From positions 29,388,001 through 29,452,000 of the forward strand of contig OZ116699.1 of assembly GCA_964199315.1 (NCBI GenBank): 64,000 nucleotides of DNA, given 5' to 3'. This stretch comes from Orbicella franksi (lineage: Eukaryota). Each line of letters opens with the position of its first letter. The first letter of the stretch is position 1. Positions 56,882 through 64,000 of this stretch are shown one piece after another. A program made the position numbers and the translations under genes. The notes below the pieces were generated by a model. It searched no databases and was not told the DNA's origin. It was given only the letters and a program-made list of their open reading frames with translations.

Positions 56882-59800
56882 TCACAGGTAATCATTTACG
56901 TTCATCGTAGCCCCAGTCTCCCGACTCATTTCATTGGTTATTGATGGTGCCGGAGTTTCTTGGTCAGCGGCTGTTGGTGGTGAGTCGTAAACCTGCGGTG
57001 TTGCCATGTCGGCGGGTGGACTGGGGTCTATAGAGTTTGAGGCCTGAGGTTCATCAGCTTGCTGTATGGTAGTTTGTGCAGCAGGTTGGTCTAGCGGAAT
57101 GAATAGTAACTTTTAAATCAATAGCCACTCAAAGCTGGTTTTAAGAGGGCACTGTTGGCAAAAACCAATATGTAGATTCGCTCTCAATTATGACAAAATA
57201 TTTACAAGGCTAAAAAATGTTTAAAAAGGTAAAACACCAAACGTTTTCGACGTAATCTCATCTTCAGGGTGGAAAAGCTGTCCGCCACTCGCATAATTGA
57301 TAACCGTTAGGTAATTCTCGATTGGAAGTTTCGCCATGTAACAGTGAATTTGTTTGTTTAAGCTAGGTTGCCATTGTTGGATCATTAGGCCTTCTAGGAT
57401 TCTTCGCTCGTGAAAAGATTGGGCGGTACGGAGTATGTGCCAGCTAAAGAAATGCAAAGGGCTCTCGCACGGGTGACGGGCAGGTTCAGAGGTTCTGAAA
57501 TGATGTTAGGGTCAGCAAACCCTTCATTCCCTCGGGCCTAAACTTCATAACCTACGAGACCGACCAACTGAATTCGACACCTTTACTCTAGCATATGTTA
57601 CTTGGCAACTCGGCGCAGTGAACACGAATTGTCACCCGCGGGTCATCTGAGTTTCTACAAATAACAGTGCCTGTGCCACAATTACTGAACCACTTATAAT
57701 CCCACAAATCAATTCAAACTATGAAAACTACCTAATTTTGTTTTTGAAGAAATTGGAAAAGAACAGGACCACTTGGAAGTATTGCTCGTTGATATTCATT
57801 TAAATTGTCGTTCGCACCTGGTAAAAGAAAAATTGGCTTTCTTCTTAATGGAGTTTCAACTTAATGTAAACTTGGTTCATTCTGTCCAGTCTTTTATCTC
57901 TCAATCAAATTACGTGACTGTTTTTCATTTTGTGCTTATTGTTGTTATTGCTTACTTTTTCGGCACCACCGTCATTTTGTCTTTTGAAGAAAATAAGAGT
58001 AAACGGCACAAGCTCTCTCGATGAACAGTTTACTCTTAGAGTAAATACCGAGTTAATAATATTGTTTAAATATCAAAAAACAAAATGGTTGAGTGATTTT
58101 AAAGTAATCGTTGGGTAAGTTCAGATTAAATGTCTTGAGATCAGAATCGGCCGGTAAATAAAGCCACCGATTATTGTCACATACCTCTCACTTTTCGGAG
58201 ACTAAATTTGCTGACAGCTTTCCTTAGCAGCTTACTCCAACCCTTTCTTCCTCGCATCCTAGCCTTTCCGTAACGAAGCCGGATTCGTCGAAGACGTCCG
58301 CGTAACACAGCACGCAGCTTATTACAGCAGTTCCTCACACGTCGCCACATTCGTCCGTAACGTAACTGCAAGGCTCCTCCTCTGGATGGCACATATTTCC
58401 AGCGCCCTCCAATGCGGATCCCGAATCGACGTCCTCGCAGCGTGACCCTTCTTCTCTTGCCCCGATATTTTATAGTCCAATATCCGCGCCGTTTCTTAAC
58501 GAGTCTCCACCTGCCTCCGTACCTGAGTCGCATCTTCACGTAGGTCTTTCTTCGTCTGAAACCTTTCCATTTCTTTCCGTACCAGATCGTTGGTCGTCCT
58601 CGTCGGAATCGGATTGGTCTTCCTTTTCGCCTATAGTGCACCATCAAGCGTCCTTTGCGAGGGTATATCCAGCGTAGTTTACCGCGGACATACATCTTCA
58701 AACGACGAACGATACGTCTAACTGGTCTCCAAGGCCTTCTGCCGTAGCGTACCCAGACTCCTCTGCTTCGTATTCTGTGAAATGAACAGGAAAACGGAGG
58801 AACTTCAAGGACTGCTTGGAAAAGGATAATTAAGCTGCCTATTGATTTTTTTCCATGCAGCAAATATTATGACAACAGCGTTAGATTCTCTTACCTAAGG
58901 CCATAGTACTTGGTACCAACACGGAACCTTAGTCGCCCACGCGTCCTTCGGACCCTTCTGAATCGTTTGCCATATTTGAAGACAATTCTACCATTACGCT
59001 GTCCGTATCGGCGTCGACGTCTGCGTCTCCTGCGTCTGATCCTTCGCCAGTACCGTCTTAACCTTTTCCGTCTTCGTCTTCTCCTTGCACGGCGACCACG
59101 GCGCGTCGAAGGACGTCTCCATCGTTTGTTGTAAAAGAATCTTAATTTACCATAGATGAATCGAATTGGTCTGGTTTTTCTGCGGTAAAGGACGCGAAGG
59201 GTCTTACCGACTCGCCTTAAGCGTCTGTACCGTCTCTTCAGAAGAACCCTCACTCTTCGTATTCCGACTCGGTACCATCTTCTTCCAAAGTAATAGCGGA
59301 CTATGCCCAGTCGGATGCTAACACAAAAGGGAAAATCAGGAACTGATCAGTTTTAAGCCCCTAGTCAGATGCTGTTGGGTCTGTAATTCCCAAGCTATTG
59401 TTGTTTGTGATGTCACTCTGGGGCGGATACAGGATTTCAGAGAAGGGAGTTGGAGATGTGGACCAGCGAAGGCGGTTCCCTTTAGAGGTAGCCGGGGGCA
59501 TGCATTCTCTCCCCACCCCCCCCCCCCCCTACCAAACAACAAAAAAATTTTAGAATTGAGGTCCTCGAAAATGGGATGTCTCATTTTGTTTTTTAATTTA
59601 GCGGGTTTGACCGAACCCCGAGGTCTTTTCATTGCACGCCCGAGAAACAAATAGAGTATGAGCTTGTGGTTTTGTAGATGTGACTAGTGCGTGAGTAATA
59701 AGCTGGCTTGATACATTTCAGAAGGTCTATTCAGATCCCTGATGCAGGATCACATAAGGGCTAGCCAATTCGTTTGAGCCTCAATTCGTTTGCAGTTTCG

Positions 59801-62800
59801 TCTTTCATAATAATTTTAAAAAGCAAATGCTTGAGAAAGGCAATAACAATGAGGACTACAACGTAAATAACTCGACTTAAACAAACAAAATAACTGCCGT
59901 AAATAAATCCCTATTCTTACCTTAAACTACAAGACCTTCGACCGTAGCGGAAGAAGAAGCGTCCACGCTTTTGGTAGACTTGTCTCCAACGTCTTCCAAC
60001 GTATATACGCATTACGCCGTAACGCCTTCCTCTATACCGTCTACCGCGTCGCCAAGGCCTTCTTTTGGGTCTTACACGTCTTCGCCGTCTTATAGTTATC
60101 CAGCGGCGTCCACTGAAAACAGCGATCCTTGTCCGCGTGATACGTATTTTTCTATATATTCTTCCAATACGAATCACGGGTTTTCTTCCGCGGATAGTAA
60201 TCCTTCTCCATTTTCTCGAAACGCGGGCAAAGAGGCGATACTTTTTCCGTGGAACGCGTCGCCAGGCTCTTCTAAAATAGTAATACAACCAGCCGCGTGT
60301 GAACCTGTTGTGAGGAAAAAAATCATAGTGTCAAAGATGAAGTGTGGAATTCATTGCAGCGGTNNNNNNNNNNNNNNNNNNNNNNNNNNNNNNNNNNNNN
60401 NNNNNNNNNNNNNNNNNNNNNNNNNNNNNNNNNNNNNNNNNNNNNNNNNNNNNNNNNNNNNNNNNNNNNNNNNNNNNNNNNNNNNNNNNNNNNNNNNNNN
60501 CAATCAATCAATCATAGATCAATCATCAATCACTCAATCGATCGATCAGCCAAAACCTTTATTATGTTAGCTAGCCAAGGAGAAACAAAGACGGGGTTCG
60601 TCGAAAAAATTTCTGTGAGAGAGCAACCCCGCCCCATACCCACAACACATGAACACTCCACAGTACCATTCAATGAAAAAAATACCCAGGAAAGAAGGGA
60701 GTTCCCTGAACCCCATGCAGCCCATCCCCCTTGAATCCACCCATACATAGCAGTAGTGAACAGAGTCAAAATAATGTTCAGGGTAATCTTGGAGAGTGCC
60801 CGGTCACATTTTTTTCAAAATTGCCTACGAATGAAATAACTTAATAATGAAAAAAAAAAACAGGAATCTATCCATATACAAAATCTTGTCCATTTACAAG
60901 TTGAATCAAGAAACATTAACAAAAAAGACATACTGTAGTATGTATCGTTTTTTTACATTATTTGAATGTCTATACACCAGCTGGGAGCATCGATTTCTAT
61001 ATTGCCAGTGCCACGGATGTTCTTTAAAGGAACAATGTCAAAATACTTGAAGTCATATTTCCGATCTACAAAATGACTTTAAATTACCTGAGAATGAAAG
61101 TTCTCTTGAGAAGTAATAATGTACAATGAGGTTCACGACTTACGAACAAAAAATCAAATTTCACCTTGTCTAGGAAGGATGTCTGATAAACCATTTTTCT
61201 TTTAGATGAACGCGTTCAGAAGAGTGAAGAGAATATTACCTGATTCTCCTTCGGCGTCCTCCAAGGCGGAATGTTAATCTACCTTTCCACCTGAAGATCT
61301 TCCTTGTCTTTCTGCGGTAATAGATCTTGAACGGGCTGTTGCGACGTCTGTATCGCCGGATACGTCTGATTCTGCGCCTCTTTCGTCTTCGATAGCGCCT
61401 TACGCGTCGCATCTTCCGCTTGAAGCGTCGGTATTTACGTCTGCGTATGCGGCGACCTTTTCGTTTACGTCTCGGTATGATTCGTCTCCACCTCCTTCTG
61501 ACACGATACACAGGTTTTCCGCGCCTGAACCCGATTCTGCGGTATTTTCGACCTACCCGGACACAGATCCTGCCTCTGTATCGTCTTGTAGGACGCCATC
61601 GGCGTCTGACGAGGAACTGAGGTCGACGTTTGATGGATCTCCACCCTCGTCTGCGCCGTAATAAGATCTTTCCTAATCTGGGTCGATATCTAGTAGATAA
61701 AGGAATGGCATTTATAAACACGTAATTATAACAACAGTGGCGTTTATTTGTACACGTTTCCAGGGCTTTTCTCTTTCGCTGCGCCCCGCCTCTGAGAGGT
61801 GAGAAGGTGGAACATTTCCCTGCAGGGTATAGTGCCCGTTAGTTCTTTGTTATTCGTCTAACAAAGCTATACCAAATCTGAGTACAGAAGTTATAAAGTG
61901 AAAAGCGAAGGAGGAATGTTTTTGATCTGTCATTGTACGTACTTAATTGACTGGTTTTTTTTTTCGTATCGGGCCGCAATTCAAACGTTTCCCTCCTTGC
62001 TAGTTGCAATATCAATATAATTTCTTTTGCATGGCTTTCCCGTATGTTGTTGTCTTTACGGATCAACAGAGAAATTATCCTTACCTCACAATTCTAAATC
62101 GACGTTTAAAACGCATCACAAGGCGCCTTCCTCGCCTGTAAATCTTTCTAAATCGCCTTCTAAACCATACACGCATGACGCAGCCACGTCTTACGCGCCT
62201 TCCTCTTCGCCTTCGCCGACGCCGTCGTCTCATTCTTCTCTTTCTCCGGCGTGATCTTCTTCGTCTTCGCCTTCGTCTTCTTCTTCGTATGGTTCTACGT
62301 GTCCTCGGTCTTCTCAGAAGCCCTTTGTATTTTATTCGGAATCTGCCGCGTACTATACGCACTGGCCACATTTTATTTCTGAATCGGATACGAGGTTTTC
62401 CGCGGTAATATCGCAGTAATCGCCAGCGCCGACCAAAGCGGAACTTTATTGGCCTTCTGCTCAACCATCGCCATCTCTTGCCATAGCGAATTCCAATCCT
62501 GGAATTGCGGTACCTAATAAATAAAGACGTAAGACGTCAACGGAAGAAGCATTTCGTAATGAATTCTGAAAGTGCCCTGACACTTTTGTGCTTGGACCCT
62601 CACCATTTCCGGGTAATTTTGCCCGTGTCCCGCAATTCGATTCAGTATGTTTGAGTAGATTTAACCTATTGTTGTCTGCCGTCGGCCTGTCGTCTGGAAA
62701 CTGCCTCGTAAGGTCAATGGAGTTCACTACTAGACTACAATTTTTCAATTTTTTAACAATTAAAAAAAATACCAAGACGTCTCAAACGCCATTAAGTGAC

Positions 62801-64000
62801 CTAGTTTGTACTAAACGCATATTTCACAAAAGCTATATAAATTACTTCAAAAGGGTGTGTTGTTATATATATTGATAGATTCTTGCATTGTTTCACTGTC
62901 TCCAATCTAATAAAAAAGACCAATCACCGTGGATTACTTTTTATTCTACTGACGTTTTTACTTTTGCTAATTTTCCTCTCCAATTATGACAAGTTAAATC
63001 ATTGTGATGTCATACCTTATTCTTCTCCATGCACCCCTGATTCGAGCTCTTAGGTATCTACCTCGGCGGTAAGCTGGGATCCACCTTCGGCCATATTTAA
63101 AATGAAGAACGTTGCGTCGTCTTATTCGTCGCTGACGGCGTCGGTATCGACGACGCCGACGTCTCACTCGCCGCCTTCGTCGTCGTCTTCGTCTCCGTCT
63201 CCATTTCTTTCGCCGTCTTGGTCGTCGTGGCTTTCTCCTGATTACTCTCCAGCGCCGACCGTAGCGTATCATGAGCCGTCCTCCCGTTAATCTGAACGGT
63301 CTGTACCGCCGTCTAAACCGAAGAACAAGCCTTCCACGACGTCTTACGATATAGCGCCAACCAAAACCCACGCGGACCTTGAAACGCCGTGTGATTCGAC
63401 GTATTATGCGGCTTTTTCCTTTGTACGTTACTCGGAAGTATCGTCCTCTAAGATATCTGATTGAAATTCAAATAAAATAGAGTCAGAACAGAACTTTCAA
63501 TATCCTGCTGTCCGACGTGGAGGACGCAAACACAACTCCCGGAGCTCGAATAAATTAGAATAAATTAAATATATAAATTCCAGCAACTGGCAGTCCGGAC
63601 GTACAATGCTTAAGTCCTGCAGTTCAAGTCATTTGCCATTTTGTCATTTTTCTGTGCGCTATCTCATTTCTACCTACTTTTACTTTAACGCAAGAAGTGA
63701 ATATACAAGGATGGCTAGAATGTTCACTAACCACAATCTAAAAATTATGTACACGAAGTTATTGTTTCTCCCCCTGAACAATTCTCTACGATATTTTTAA
63801 GTGGCATTTCCTTTGTTGTAAATATCATTTTTCTCACCGGAAGGTTATCCATCGACGATGGTAACGCATCCTGTATCCACCCCGCCACCTCACAATCGGT
63901 CTCCAACTTCTGCGGTAATAGAAAAGAATCATAGGCCGCCTGCGTCGGCGTATGTAGCGCCGTCTACGTCTTCGACGTCGTCGTTGTAATCGTCGTCGCC
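56882..64000 (-). CDS. Large Arg-rich modular repeat protein with an acidic C-terminal tail (5' end outside the window), >=1028 aa, >=8 exons
   Basis: Exons 63838->64000, 63016-63456, 62085-62513, 61240-61689, 59921-60304, 58895-59317, 58185-58774 and 56882-57090. All introns are GT-AG; the first six are phase 2 and the last is phase 1. 3089 nt join without a stop. An N-gap lies in one intron. Confidence 0.85.
57215..57480 (-). mobile_element. Penelope-like element remnant (GIY-YIG C-terminus + hammerhead-like motif)
   Basis: HFFSWHILRTAQSFHERRILEGLMIQQWQPSLNKQI resembles the end of PLE GIY-YIG domains. It is followed by CACC-CTGAAGA-...-GAAAACGTTT-GGTG at 57235-57271. Confidence 0.55.
60364..60500. 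other. Assembly gap (N run) next to a (CAAT)n/(ATCG)n microsatellite
   Basis: 137 N; the true gap size is unknown. Confidence 0.99.

Follow-up and report, generated by a model that had tools for sequence, protein, structure and literature searches.

Tandem β-hairpins of about 20 residues are characteristic of the choline-binding and CROP solenoids, in which conserved glycine and aromatic residues recur from unit to unit and ligands are bound multivalently. Single amphipathic hairpins of 17–21 residues, rich in arginine and aromatic residues, constitute the antimicrobial peptides tachyplesin, polyphemusin, arenicin and protegrin. Protamines are about half arginine and act as polyanion condensers, and the proteins of sandcastle-worm cement and the mussel foot are secreted, very basic and repetitive, and rely on charge pairing with polyanions or surfaces. 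Here, we describe an arginine-rich hairpin-repeat gene located in a 64,000-nucleotide (nt) stretch of the genome of Orbicella franksi (assembly GCA_964199315.1, contig OZ116699.1, positions 29,388,001 to 29,452,000; hereafter, the window), where an original prediction, made from the letters of the DNA, had placed 18-residue hairpin-like repeats between positions 58185 and 63456. The window contains the 3´ end of a genuine stony-coral gene that is spliced and expressed.

The protein encoded by this gene can be set against each of these systems. As in the choline-binding and CROP solenoids, its hairpins are arranged in tandem; however, both connections consist of tight turns, long loops are absent, and the units are predicted to close into 12-strand blocks. 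The cationic antimicrobial hairpins are single, disulfide-braced and cut from small precursors, whereas the coral hairpins lack paired cysteines, are joined in hundreds and are predicted to assemble as domains. The coral chain, with thousands of residues, a conserved hydrophobic periodicity, modules predicted to be folded and ILEI domains, contrasts with protamines, which are short, disordered nuclear proteins. The marine adhesive proteins represent the closest functional analogy, although theirs are Lys/Gly/Tyr(DOPA)-rich and largely unfolded, and there is no relation in sequence or fold.

The minus strand is the coding strand, and within each exon a single minus-strand frame is both open and Arg-rich. 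Exon limits were read from the canonical acceptor and donor motifs that bound them, which gave the following features (window coordinates):

63838–64000, minus strand: end of the preceding repeat exon, with the end of a linker, hairpins A and B, and the donor CG/GTGAGA in phase 2; in full (64317–63838) this exon extends past the window end.
63456–63016, minus strand: repeat exon E1 (441 nt; splice-site reading; phase 2 at both ends), with four hairpins (63455–63237), a poly-Arg linker (63236–63114) and two hairpins (63113–63018).
62513–62085, minus strand: repeat exon E2 (429 nt; splice-site reading, with junction 61689/62085 in RNA), with four hairpins (62512–62315), a poly-Arg linker (62314–62183) and, from a conserved Cys, two hairpins (62182–62087).
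61689–61240, minus strand: repeat exon E3 (450 nt; splice-site reading and RNA), with four hairpins (61688–61476), a linker (61475–61338) and two hairpins (61337–61242).
61239–60305, minus strand: intron between E3 and E4, which contains an assembly gap (60364–60500) and is removed as one piece in RNA.
60304–59921, minus strand: repeat exon E4 (384 nt; splice-site reading and RNA), with four hairpins (60303–60091), a short linker (60090–60019) and two hairpins (60018–59923).
59317–58895, minus strand: repeat exon E5 (423 nt; splice-site reading and RNA), with four hairpins (59316–59119), a linker (59118–58993) and two hairpins (58992–58897) that open the terminal 12-hairpin block.
58774–58185, minus strand: last repeat exon E6 (590 nt, 196 residues), with ten hairpins and the invariant NCCNKLRAVLRG motif; donor at 58185 in phase 1.
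57090–56882, minus strand: terminal coding exon of the same protein, with the stop codon at 56884–56882; RNA joint 57090/58185.

RNA contigs of four runs were placed on positions 56800–62799; X2 and X5 are poly(A) data from study P2, X9 comes from study P6, and the RNA runs carrying window sequence are labelled as coral metagenome or coral species. Junctions 58774/58895, 59317/59921, 60304/61240, 61689/62085 and 58185/57090 were found exactly in spliced contigs (X2, X5, X9), and at all of them the intron reads CT..AC on the plus strand, that is, GT..AG on the minus strand. Further, loose contig ends at 62515 read on into 63018 onwards, which supports the 62513/63016 junction; an alternative in-frame acceptor for E1 may be used at 63447. 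The assembly gap lies 60 nt upstream of the E4 acceptor. Since RNA joins E3 and E4 in frame across it (the joint, cut at +2, is present as 60302/61238 in X2, X5 and X9), the continuity of the frame is known and the main isoform has no hidden exon there. The same join between the last repeat exon and the tail exon was observed in a transcript-derived open reading frame (ORF) of a close relative (P0073). Run X1 showed low depth over the introns, without joints, and is best read as DNA or pre-mRNA.

The spliced window product up to the tail comprises 961 residues, with 41% Arg and not a single Asp or Glu. The period of around 18 residues, with which the original prediction stood or fell, was recovered by autocorrelation against 200–300 shuffles: at lag 18, z-scores were 8.0 for hydrophobic residues, 6.0 for Gly, 6.3 for Arg/Lys and 8.1 for self-identity of non-Arg residues, with further (harmonic) peaks at lags 36 and 54. 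The lag-18 peak recurs over the whole 4,299-residue basic body described below. A set of 65 exons, drawn from this gene and other assemblies, yields the unit consensus h-x-R-G-R-h-x-h-x-h-G-R-R-W-R-x-h-R; in four of the six hairpins, Trp occupies its consensus position in 61–89% of the sequences, about 80% have the turn Gly in two hairpins, and the block after each linker opens with Cys (47%; Ser in 24%). Each 18-residue unit would correspond to a β-hairpin, that is, a pair of short strands, each alternating between Arg and hydrophobic or aromatic residues, connected by two tight Gly/Arg turns. This alternation suggests that one face of the strands is hydrophobic and the other is formed by Arg. 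One module within the window carries a charge of +49 in 104 residues and no acidic residue, and the poly-Arg linkers between domains range from roughly 10 to 70 residues. A very different composition was found in the terminal exon, which encodes a 69-residue acidic Pro/Ala/Thr/Gln tail with 11 acidic residues and one basic residue.

The exon plan that had been proposed, in which exons of 384–450 nt each hold four repeats, an Arg linker and two repeats, holds in all 25 exons of this type in the gene. Likewise, the last repeat exon contains the expected ten hairpins (20 predicted strands), which with the two encoded by E5 make 12. The lengths of E1–E5 are all multiples of three. It had also been claimed that every intron falls in phase 2 behind the last hydrophobic residue; this is correct for all introns between E1 and E6, where the codon split after its second base directly follows the last I, V or L of a hairpin, but not for the intron after 58185, which lies in phase 1 and leads to the exon 57090–56882.

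The position of these introns relative to the putative domain could be assessed from three kinds of exon. The 4 + linker + 2 array starts with a lone exon of linker plus two hairpins; its last block has the 2 + 10 arrangement; and in another anthozoan (metagenome contigs L027 and L029) linker, two and four hairpins run uninterrupted in each exon, which ends within the linker. Taken together, these observations indicate that the linker-bounded six-hairpin block is the module and that the exons in the window are shifted relative to it. An exon of the 3´ half thus encodes hairpins 3–6 of one domain, a linker and hairpins 1–2 of the next, so that the phase-2 introns cut every domain and splicing rebuilds it, as originally proposed and now supported by one-exon blocks with introns in their linkers. 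The same three exon types led us to reject the idea that the exon is itself the module, with the linker as an internal loop. The one-exon contigs derive from BioSamples SAMN12856788, -789 and -796, with an identical protein in the first and the ninth sample. The series SAMN12856788–811 comprises metagenomes of 12 Leiopathes glaberrima, 8 Callogorgia delta and 4 Paramuricea colonies (PMC7068898). If the samples are ordered by species, the black coral Leiopathes is the most likely host of the one-exon blocks.

A short second copy of the gene is located on the minus strand 105.5–111.4 kb past the window end (L014:2144-2380 to L013:6538-6933). It comprises the last seven repeat exons and a longer acidic tail, all its exons are open, and protein identity amounts to 59–78%. 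Arg-rich exons were absent from the next 107 kb upstream of it, and a search of the whole 497-Mb genome with the exon profile matched only the main locus and this neighbouring copy. Over 897 codons, the two copies differ by 0.75 synonymous (dS) and 0.19 non-synonymous (dN) substitutions per site, a dN/dS of 0.26, and differences at the three codon positions (0.226, 0.165 and 0.349) show an excess at the third. Between the copies, 86% of hydrophobic and 87% of basic positions retain their class. The comparison demonstrates purifying selection on the Arg frame, in line with the earlier suggestion that the repeats have been kept by selection.

The exons in the window also have one-to-one counterparts in other assemblies, with 59–91% identity (91, 68, 66 and 59% for the exon 61689–61240), compared to at most 56% with the other exons of their own gene. 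The exons were thus duplicated before those corals diverged from one another, and every copy has since been retained separately, which agrees with the old exon duplication that had been inferred from the divergence of the modules.

To model the domain, we folded a natural contiguous six-hairpin block from another anthozoan (P0041, residues 1–120) with AlphaFold2. The 71-row alignment combined six contiguous blocks with 65 four-hairpin parts, 24 of which stem from the polycation gene. Partial rows for hairpins 1–2 were left out because MAFFT placed them on hairpins 4–5, itself a sign of internal duplication. The model reached a mean predicted local distance difference test (pLDDT) of 84.9 and a predicted template modelling score (pTM) of 0.74, with 12 strands within residues 10–110 and strand lengths of 5-8-6-8-6-5, a longer loop, and 5-8-6-8-6-4. 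Hairpin profiles paired B with E (0.59) and C with F (0.61) which, together with the MAFFT overlay, points to a three-hairpin, six-strand meander of about 54 residues as the structural sub-unit. The domain would then consist of two such up-and-down units (12 strands, around 105–110 residues); the terminal 2 + 10 block would contain four three-hairpin units, and the upstream domain exons about three. E6, folded with 15 orthologues, gave a mean pLDDT of 69, with 80–88 in its C-terminal half, and the strand rhythm appeared three more times. The weak N-terminal part was expected since the first two hairpins of this block sit on the previous exon. The six-hairpin block is thus predicted to fold as a 12-stranded domain, and the folded β-hairpin domain of the original prediction is favoured by this model and by an independent one of a homologue, described next.

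Among the AlphaFold DB clusters, the sole real match was A0A3M6UD74, residues 436–548 (E 3e-6, template modelling score (TM) 0.79, root-mean-square deviation 2.2 Å, 27% identity). This is a homologue with the same module, an uncharacterised, fragment-sized model of 889 residues with neither an independent family nor an assigned function which, from its accession series, we take to belong to the stony coral Pocillopora damicornis. Against the PDB, the best Foldseek row had an E of only 1.3 and a TM of 0.25. Exhaustive alignment with 48,161 PDB representatives gave a best Z of 2.9, for small up-and-down barrels (according to the tool, unmatched models typically reach Z 7–8), and re-alignment of the 340 best Foldseek chains gave a best Z of 3.0, for fascin, obtained only by spanning two of its domains. 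TM values in the ESM Atlas structure comparison did not exceed 0.40. The predicted fold thus has no neighbour outside its own family in the PDB, AlphaFold DB and ESM Atlas.

The solenoid, propeller and trefoil classes that had been put forward for the block found no backing in these searches, where they yielded weak Foldseek rows only and, apart from fascin, which is built of trefoil domains, Z <2 on re-alignment; further, the hairpins form two sets of three in the model. For the solenoids CbpJ, CbpF, Pce and TcdA, E was >1, TM 0.15–0.18 and Z <2 on re-alignment, which does not place the block among them. The β-trefoils Symfoil, FGF1 and IL-1β gave TM 0.14–0.24 with E >2.7, and the internal repeat observed here is 2 × 3 hairpins rather than 3 × 2. 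The β-propellers of Keap1 (Kelch) and FBXW11 gave TM 0.17–0.19 with E >4 and were not among the rows with Z ≥2. The best, though weak, rows came from small up-and-down barrels and β-clams (PliC/MliC, fatty-acid- and bile-acid-binding proteins, designed barrels), which share the all-antiparallel meander order; however, Z was 2.1–2.9 over about 60 of 110 residues, TM was about 0.2, and these proteins have 8–10 strands, ordinary surfaces and no internal repeat.

At the sequence level, hmmscan of the six window exons against Pfam (E up to 10) assigned no family to five of them and returned one chance-level row for the sixth (Med23, E 0.29). The profiles of choline-binding (cell-wall-binding) and CROP repeats, which are of about 20 residues and of the GW...WYY type, remained unmatched in the six exons, and the acidic tail matched no Pfam family. 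A profile search of 1.84 billion representative proteins returned 90 matches, all of them short unnamed ORFs from ENA and Logan assemblies, with no long or named protein; those inspected were exon ORFs or transcript fragments, apart from five of low rank that were simple poly-Arg/Lys proteins. The ESM Atlas feature search with E6 returned no usable match, and a homologue search for the N-terminus, with the first Arg-rich exon as query, returned one fragment that lacks it. In the literature searched on arginine-rich and polycationic coral proteins, on partners of nematocyst polyglutamate and by UniProt accession, the protein is undescribed.

The gene extends about 100 kb past the window end. 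In the 219 kb examined there, Arg-rich exons continue on the minus strand to about 93.7 kb; the gene spans about 106 kb in all, and we estimate the length of its product at 8–9 thousand residues. Of these, 4,368 are encoded in the 3´ half, which consists of 25 exons with the 4 + linker + 2 plan, the ten-hairpin exon and the tail; the basic body makes up 4,299, with 48% Arg, 7% Lys, three acidic residues and a net charge of +2,374. In the 5´ half, poly-Arg stretches have exons of their own, which alternate with domain exons of 165–185 residues (nine to ten hairpins), and at least three Arg-rich ILEI/FAM3-type domains, each encoded by two exons, lie between the hairpin domains, 48–90 kb past the window end:

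L012:1085-1324 and L011:8169-8405, minus strand: ILEI-type domain.
L011:480-701 and L010:9149-9550 (also L011:1538-1831), minus strand: ILEI-type domain.
L008:2049-2243 and L007:9354-9665, minus strand: ILEI-type domain.

One C-terminal half-exon, 87.2–87.4 kb past the window end, matched ILEI (PF15711) with 29.7 bits (gathering threshold 27; E 9e-7) over profile positions 41–89. Two further copies were weak (15.7 and 17.1 bits), and the N-terminal half-exons alone gave no Pfam match. Two candidate first exons that resemble signal peptides were identified on the minus strand at L013:950-1001 and L013:2424-2514, around 100–101.5 kb past the window end; both have phase-1 donors that match the phase of the first Arg-rich exon. 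The stretch surrounding the first of them, MHYMHLKLLLIQTVFFF, was present in poly(A) RNA runs (0.5–0.8 of 10 sampled words).

Two ten-hairpin exon frames of the 5´ half (L011:6134-6691 and L011:4525-5082, 83.5–85.7 kb past the window end) have identical 186-residue translations although they lie 1.6 kb apart, and near-identical copies are located 10 and 17 kb further down. These frames represent either a very recent tandem duplication in the gene or a duplication in the assembly.

The explanation that best accounts for these results, for which we estimate a probability of about 0.6, is that the window contains the 3´ end of a giant gene whose hairpin domains make up a secreted, multivalent polycation. 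ILEI/FAM3-type domains are extracellular or luminal and, because of these domains and the candidate first exon, the protein would be expected to enter the secretory pathway. It would then bind, condense or glue polyanionic material (sulfated mucus glycans or other polyanions, for example, or surfaces of negative charge), with charge, valency and rigid modules studded with Arg and Trp doing the work (about +49 per 104-residue module, in scores of modules). Multivalent electrostatic binding, condensation or adhesion is thus a plausible mode of action.

Several points weigh against this explanation. With around 0.45 positive charges per residue, the predicted domain could require counter-ions for stability, and AlphaFold models of amphipathic hairpin repeats may be idealised. 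For the upstream half of the gene, the model derives only from reading frames and splice motifs, the 5´ end has two possible first exons, neither of whose splices was seen in RNA, and contig-based RNA depth cannot rank expression.

A more specific role can be put forward tentatively. Spirocysts are sticky capsules peculiar to hexacorals and are present in both stony and black corals; the family described here occurs in stony corals and most likely also in a black coral. Basic material is marked by eosin because this dye is anionic. In the stony coral Lophelia pertusa, a highly eosinophilic substance, made in bulk in spiroblasts, fills the spirocyst tubules; once the tubule is fired, it forms the microfibrillae, and it adheres to glass (PMC5363355). 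Acidophilic granular gland cells, another candidate site, have also been described in that coral (PMC5363355). It is conceivable, though in our view unlikely, that the six-hairpin block is a new fold with Arg at nearly all solvent-facing positions and that the chain is the basic adhesive filling the spirocyst tubules, i.e., a structured polyarginine glue.

Other explanations of the locus can be considered. The chain could be a polycation that is disordered or folds only conditionally, in which the pattern merely biases it towards hairpins and, as in a protamine-like molecule, β structure forms only once a polyanion neutralises it. The extreme charge density (+49 in 104 residues), the 48% Arg overall, the poly-Arg linkers, which are certainly not folded, and the mean pLDDT of only 69 for the E6 model all fit this possibility. 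However, the module itself reached pLDDT 85 and pTM 0.74 with an independent AlphaFold DB model in agreement, and the conservation of hydrophobic class between copies (86%) and of the turn Gly and Trp across 65 exons implies more constraint than charge alone would need, so we regard a disordered chain as unlikely, if worth keeping in view. Still less probable, in our opinion, is a polyprotein precursor whose linkers are cut by furin-type convertases to release cationic modules of about 110 residues, or hairpins, with antimicrobial or anti-fouling activity, similarly to the multi-peptide precursors of insects. Every linker indeed consists of successive R-X-K/R-R motifs, the hairpins resemble β-hairpin antimicrobial peptides in being amphipathic and rich in Arg and Trp, and the acidic tail recalls the anionic pro-pieces of cationic peptide precursors. 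Dibasic motifs are, however, equally common inside the modules and do not single out the linkers as specific sites, the tail, with its 69 residues, is too short to balance more than 2,000 charges, processed products are not known, and the signal peptide is only a candidate.

An Arg-rich protein that condenses DNA or RNA in the nucleus or cytoplasm, for instance in sperm, would share the protamine-like composition, and poly-Arg can act as a nuclear import signal; we nevertheless consider such a condenser very improbable. The same gene contains ILEI domains of the extracellular or luminal type, its transcript was found in colony poly(A) RNA from several studies rather than in a sperm-specific set, and its product is about 100 times the size of protamines. 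Lastly, a CGN/AGR-rich repeat could have given rise to the Arg frame incidentally, or the real product could come from the opposite strand, where long Ser/Pro/Thr-rich ORFs run over the same exons. The use of minus-strand GT..AG sites in RNA, the fact that only the Arg frame is open through every exon, and differences between copies that peak at the third position of this frame (dN/dS 0.26) leave this alternative with practically no weight.

If the fold prediction holds, the hairpin module is a natural limit case for protein folding, with about one positive charge per two residues on a compact β domain, which would bear on the limits of surface supercharging and on Arg–Arg and Arg–Trp packing, and would provide a natural scaffold for polyanion binding, cell entry or adhesion. 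Both the hairpin domain family and its predicted fold appear to be new. Further, this very large, expressed and conserved anthozoan gene has been missed or fragmented by annotation; the open annotation consulted comprises only ORF fragments and the one unnamed 889-residue model. Computed digestion with trypsin cuts the 4,299-residue body into 2,325 pieces, of which 22 have at least seven residues and cover 4% of the chain; standard proteomics can therefore hardly see the protein, which may explain why it has gone unnoticed. The locus is also a clean case of exon–domain mismatch and, with the same module encoded by one exon in one anthozoan and split in phase 2 with an internal linker in another, the history of the duplication unit becomes traceable.

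Some additional features were observed in and around the window. On the plus strand, long Ser/Pro/Thr-rich open frames run antisense to the Arg exons at 59971–60570 and 63102–63290; they mirror CGN/AGR codon usage, and neither splice orientation nor the substitution pattern supports them. An interspersed repeat of about 85 nt, with at least 40 copies of 76–93% identity on many chromosomes, lies at 59415–59500, inside the intron between E4 and E5, and showed no Rfam match. RNA contig depth reached about 4,000 at this repeat compared to about 200 on exons, and the depth spike at 59400–59599 was rejected as a signal of the polycation gene since it coincides with the repeat. Another spike, at 62200–62399, was also rejected; it falls on a run coding for poly-Arg, where cross-matching is the likely cause. 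Finally, two Logan contigs (L025 and L026, from runs SRR13272317 and SRR16156407) encode distant homologues of the terminal 12-hairpin block with the invariant NCC motif, in which the C-terminus is basic rather than an acidic tail.

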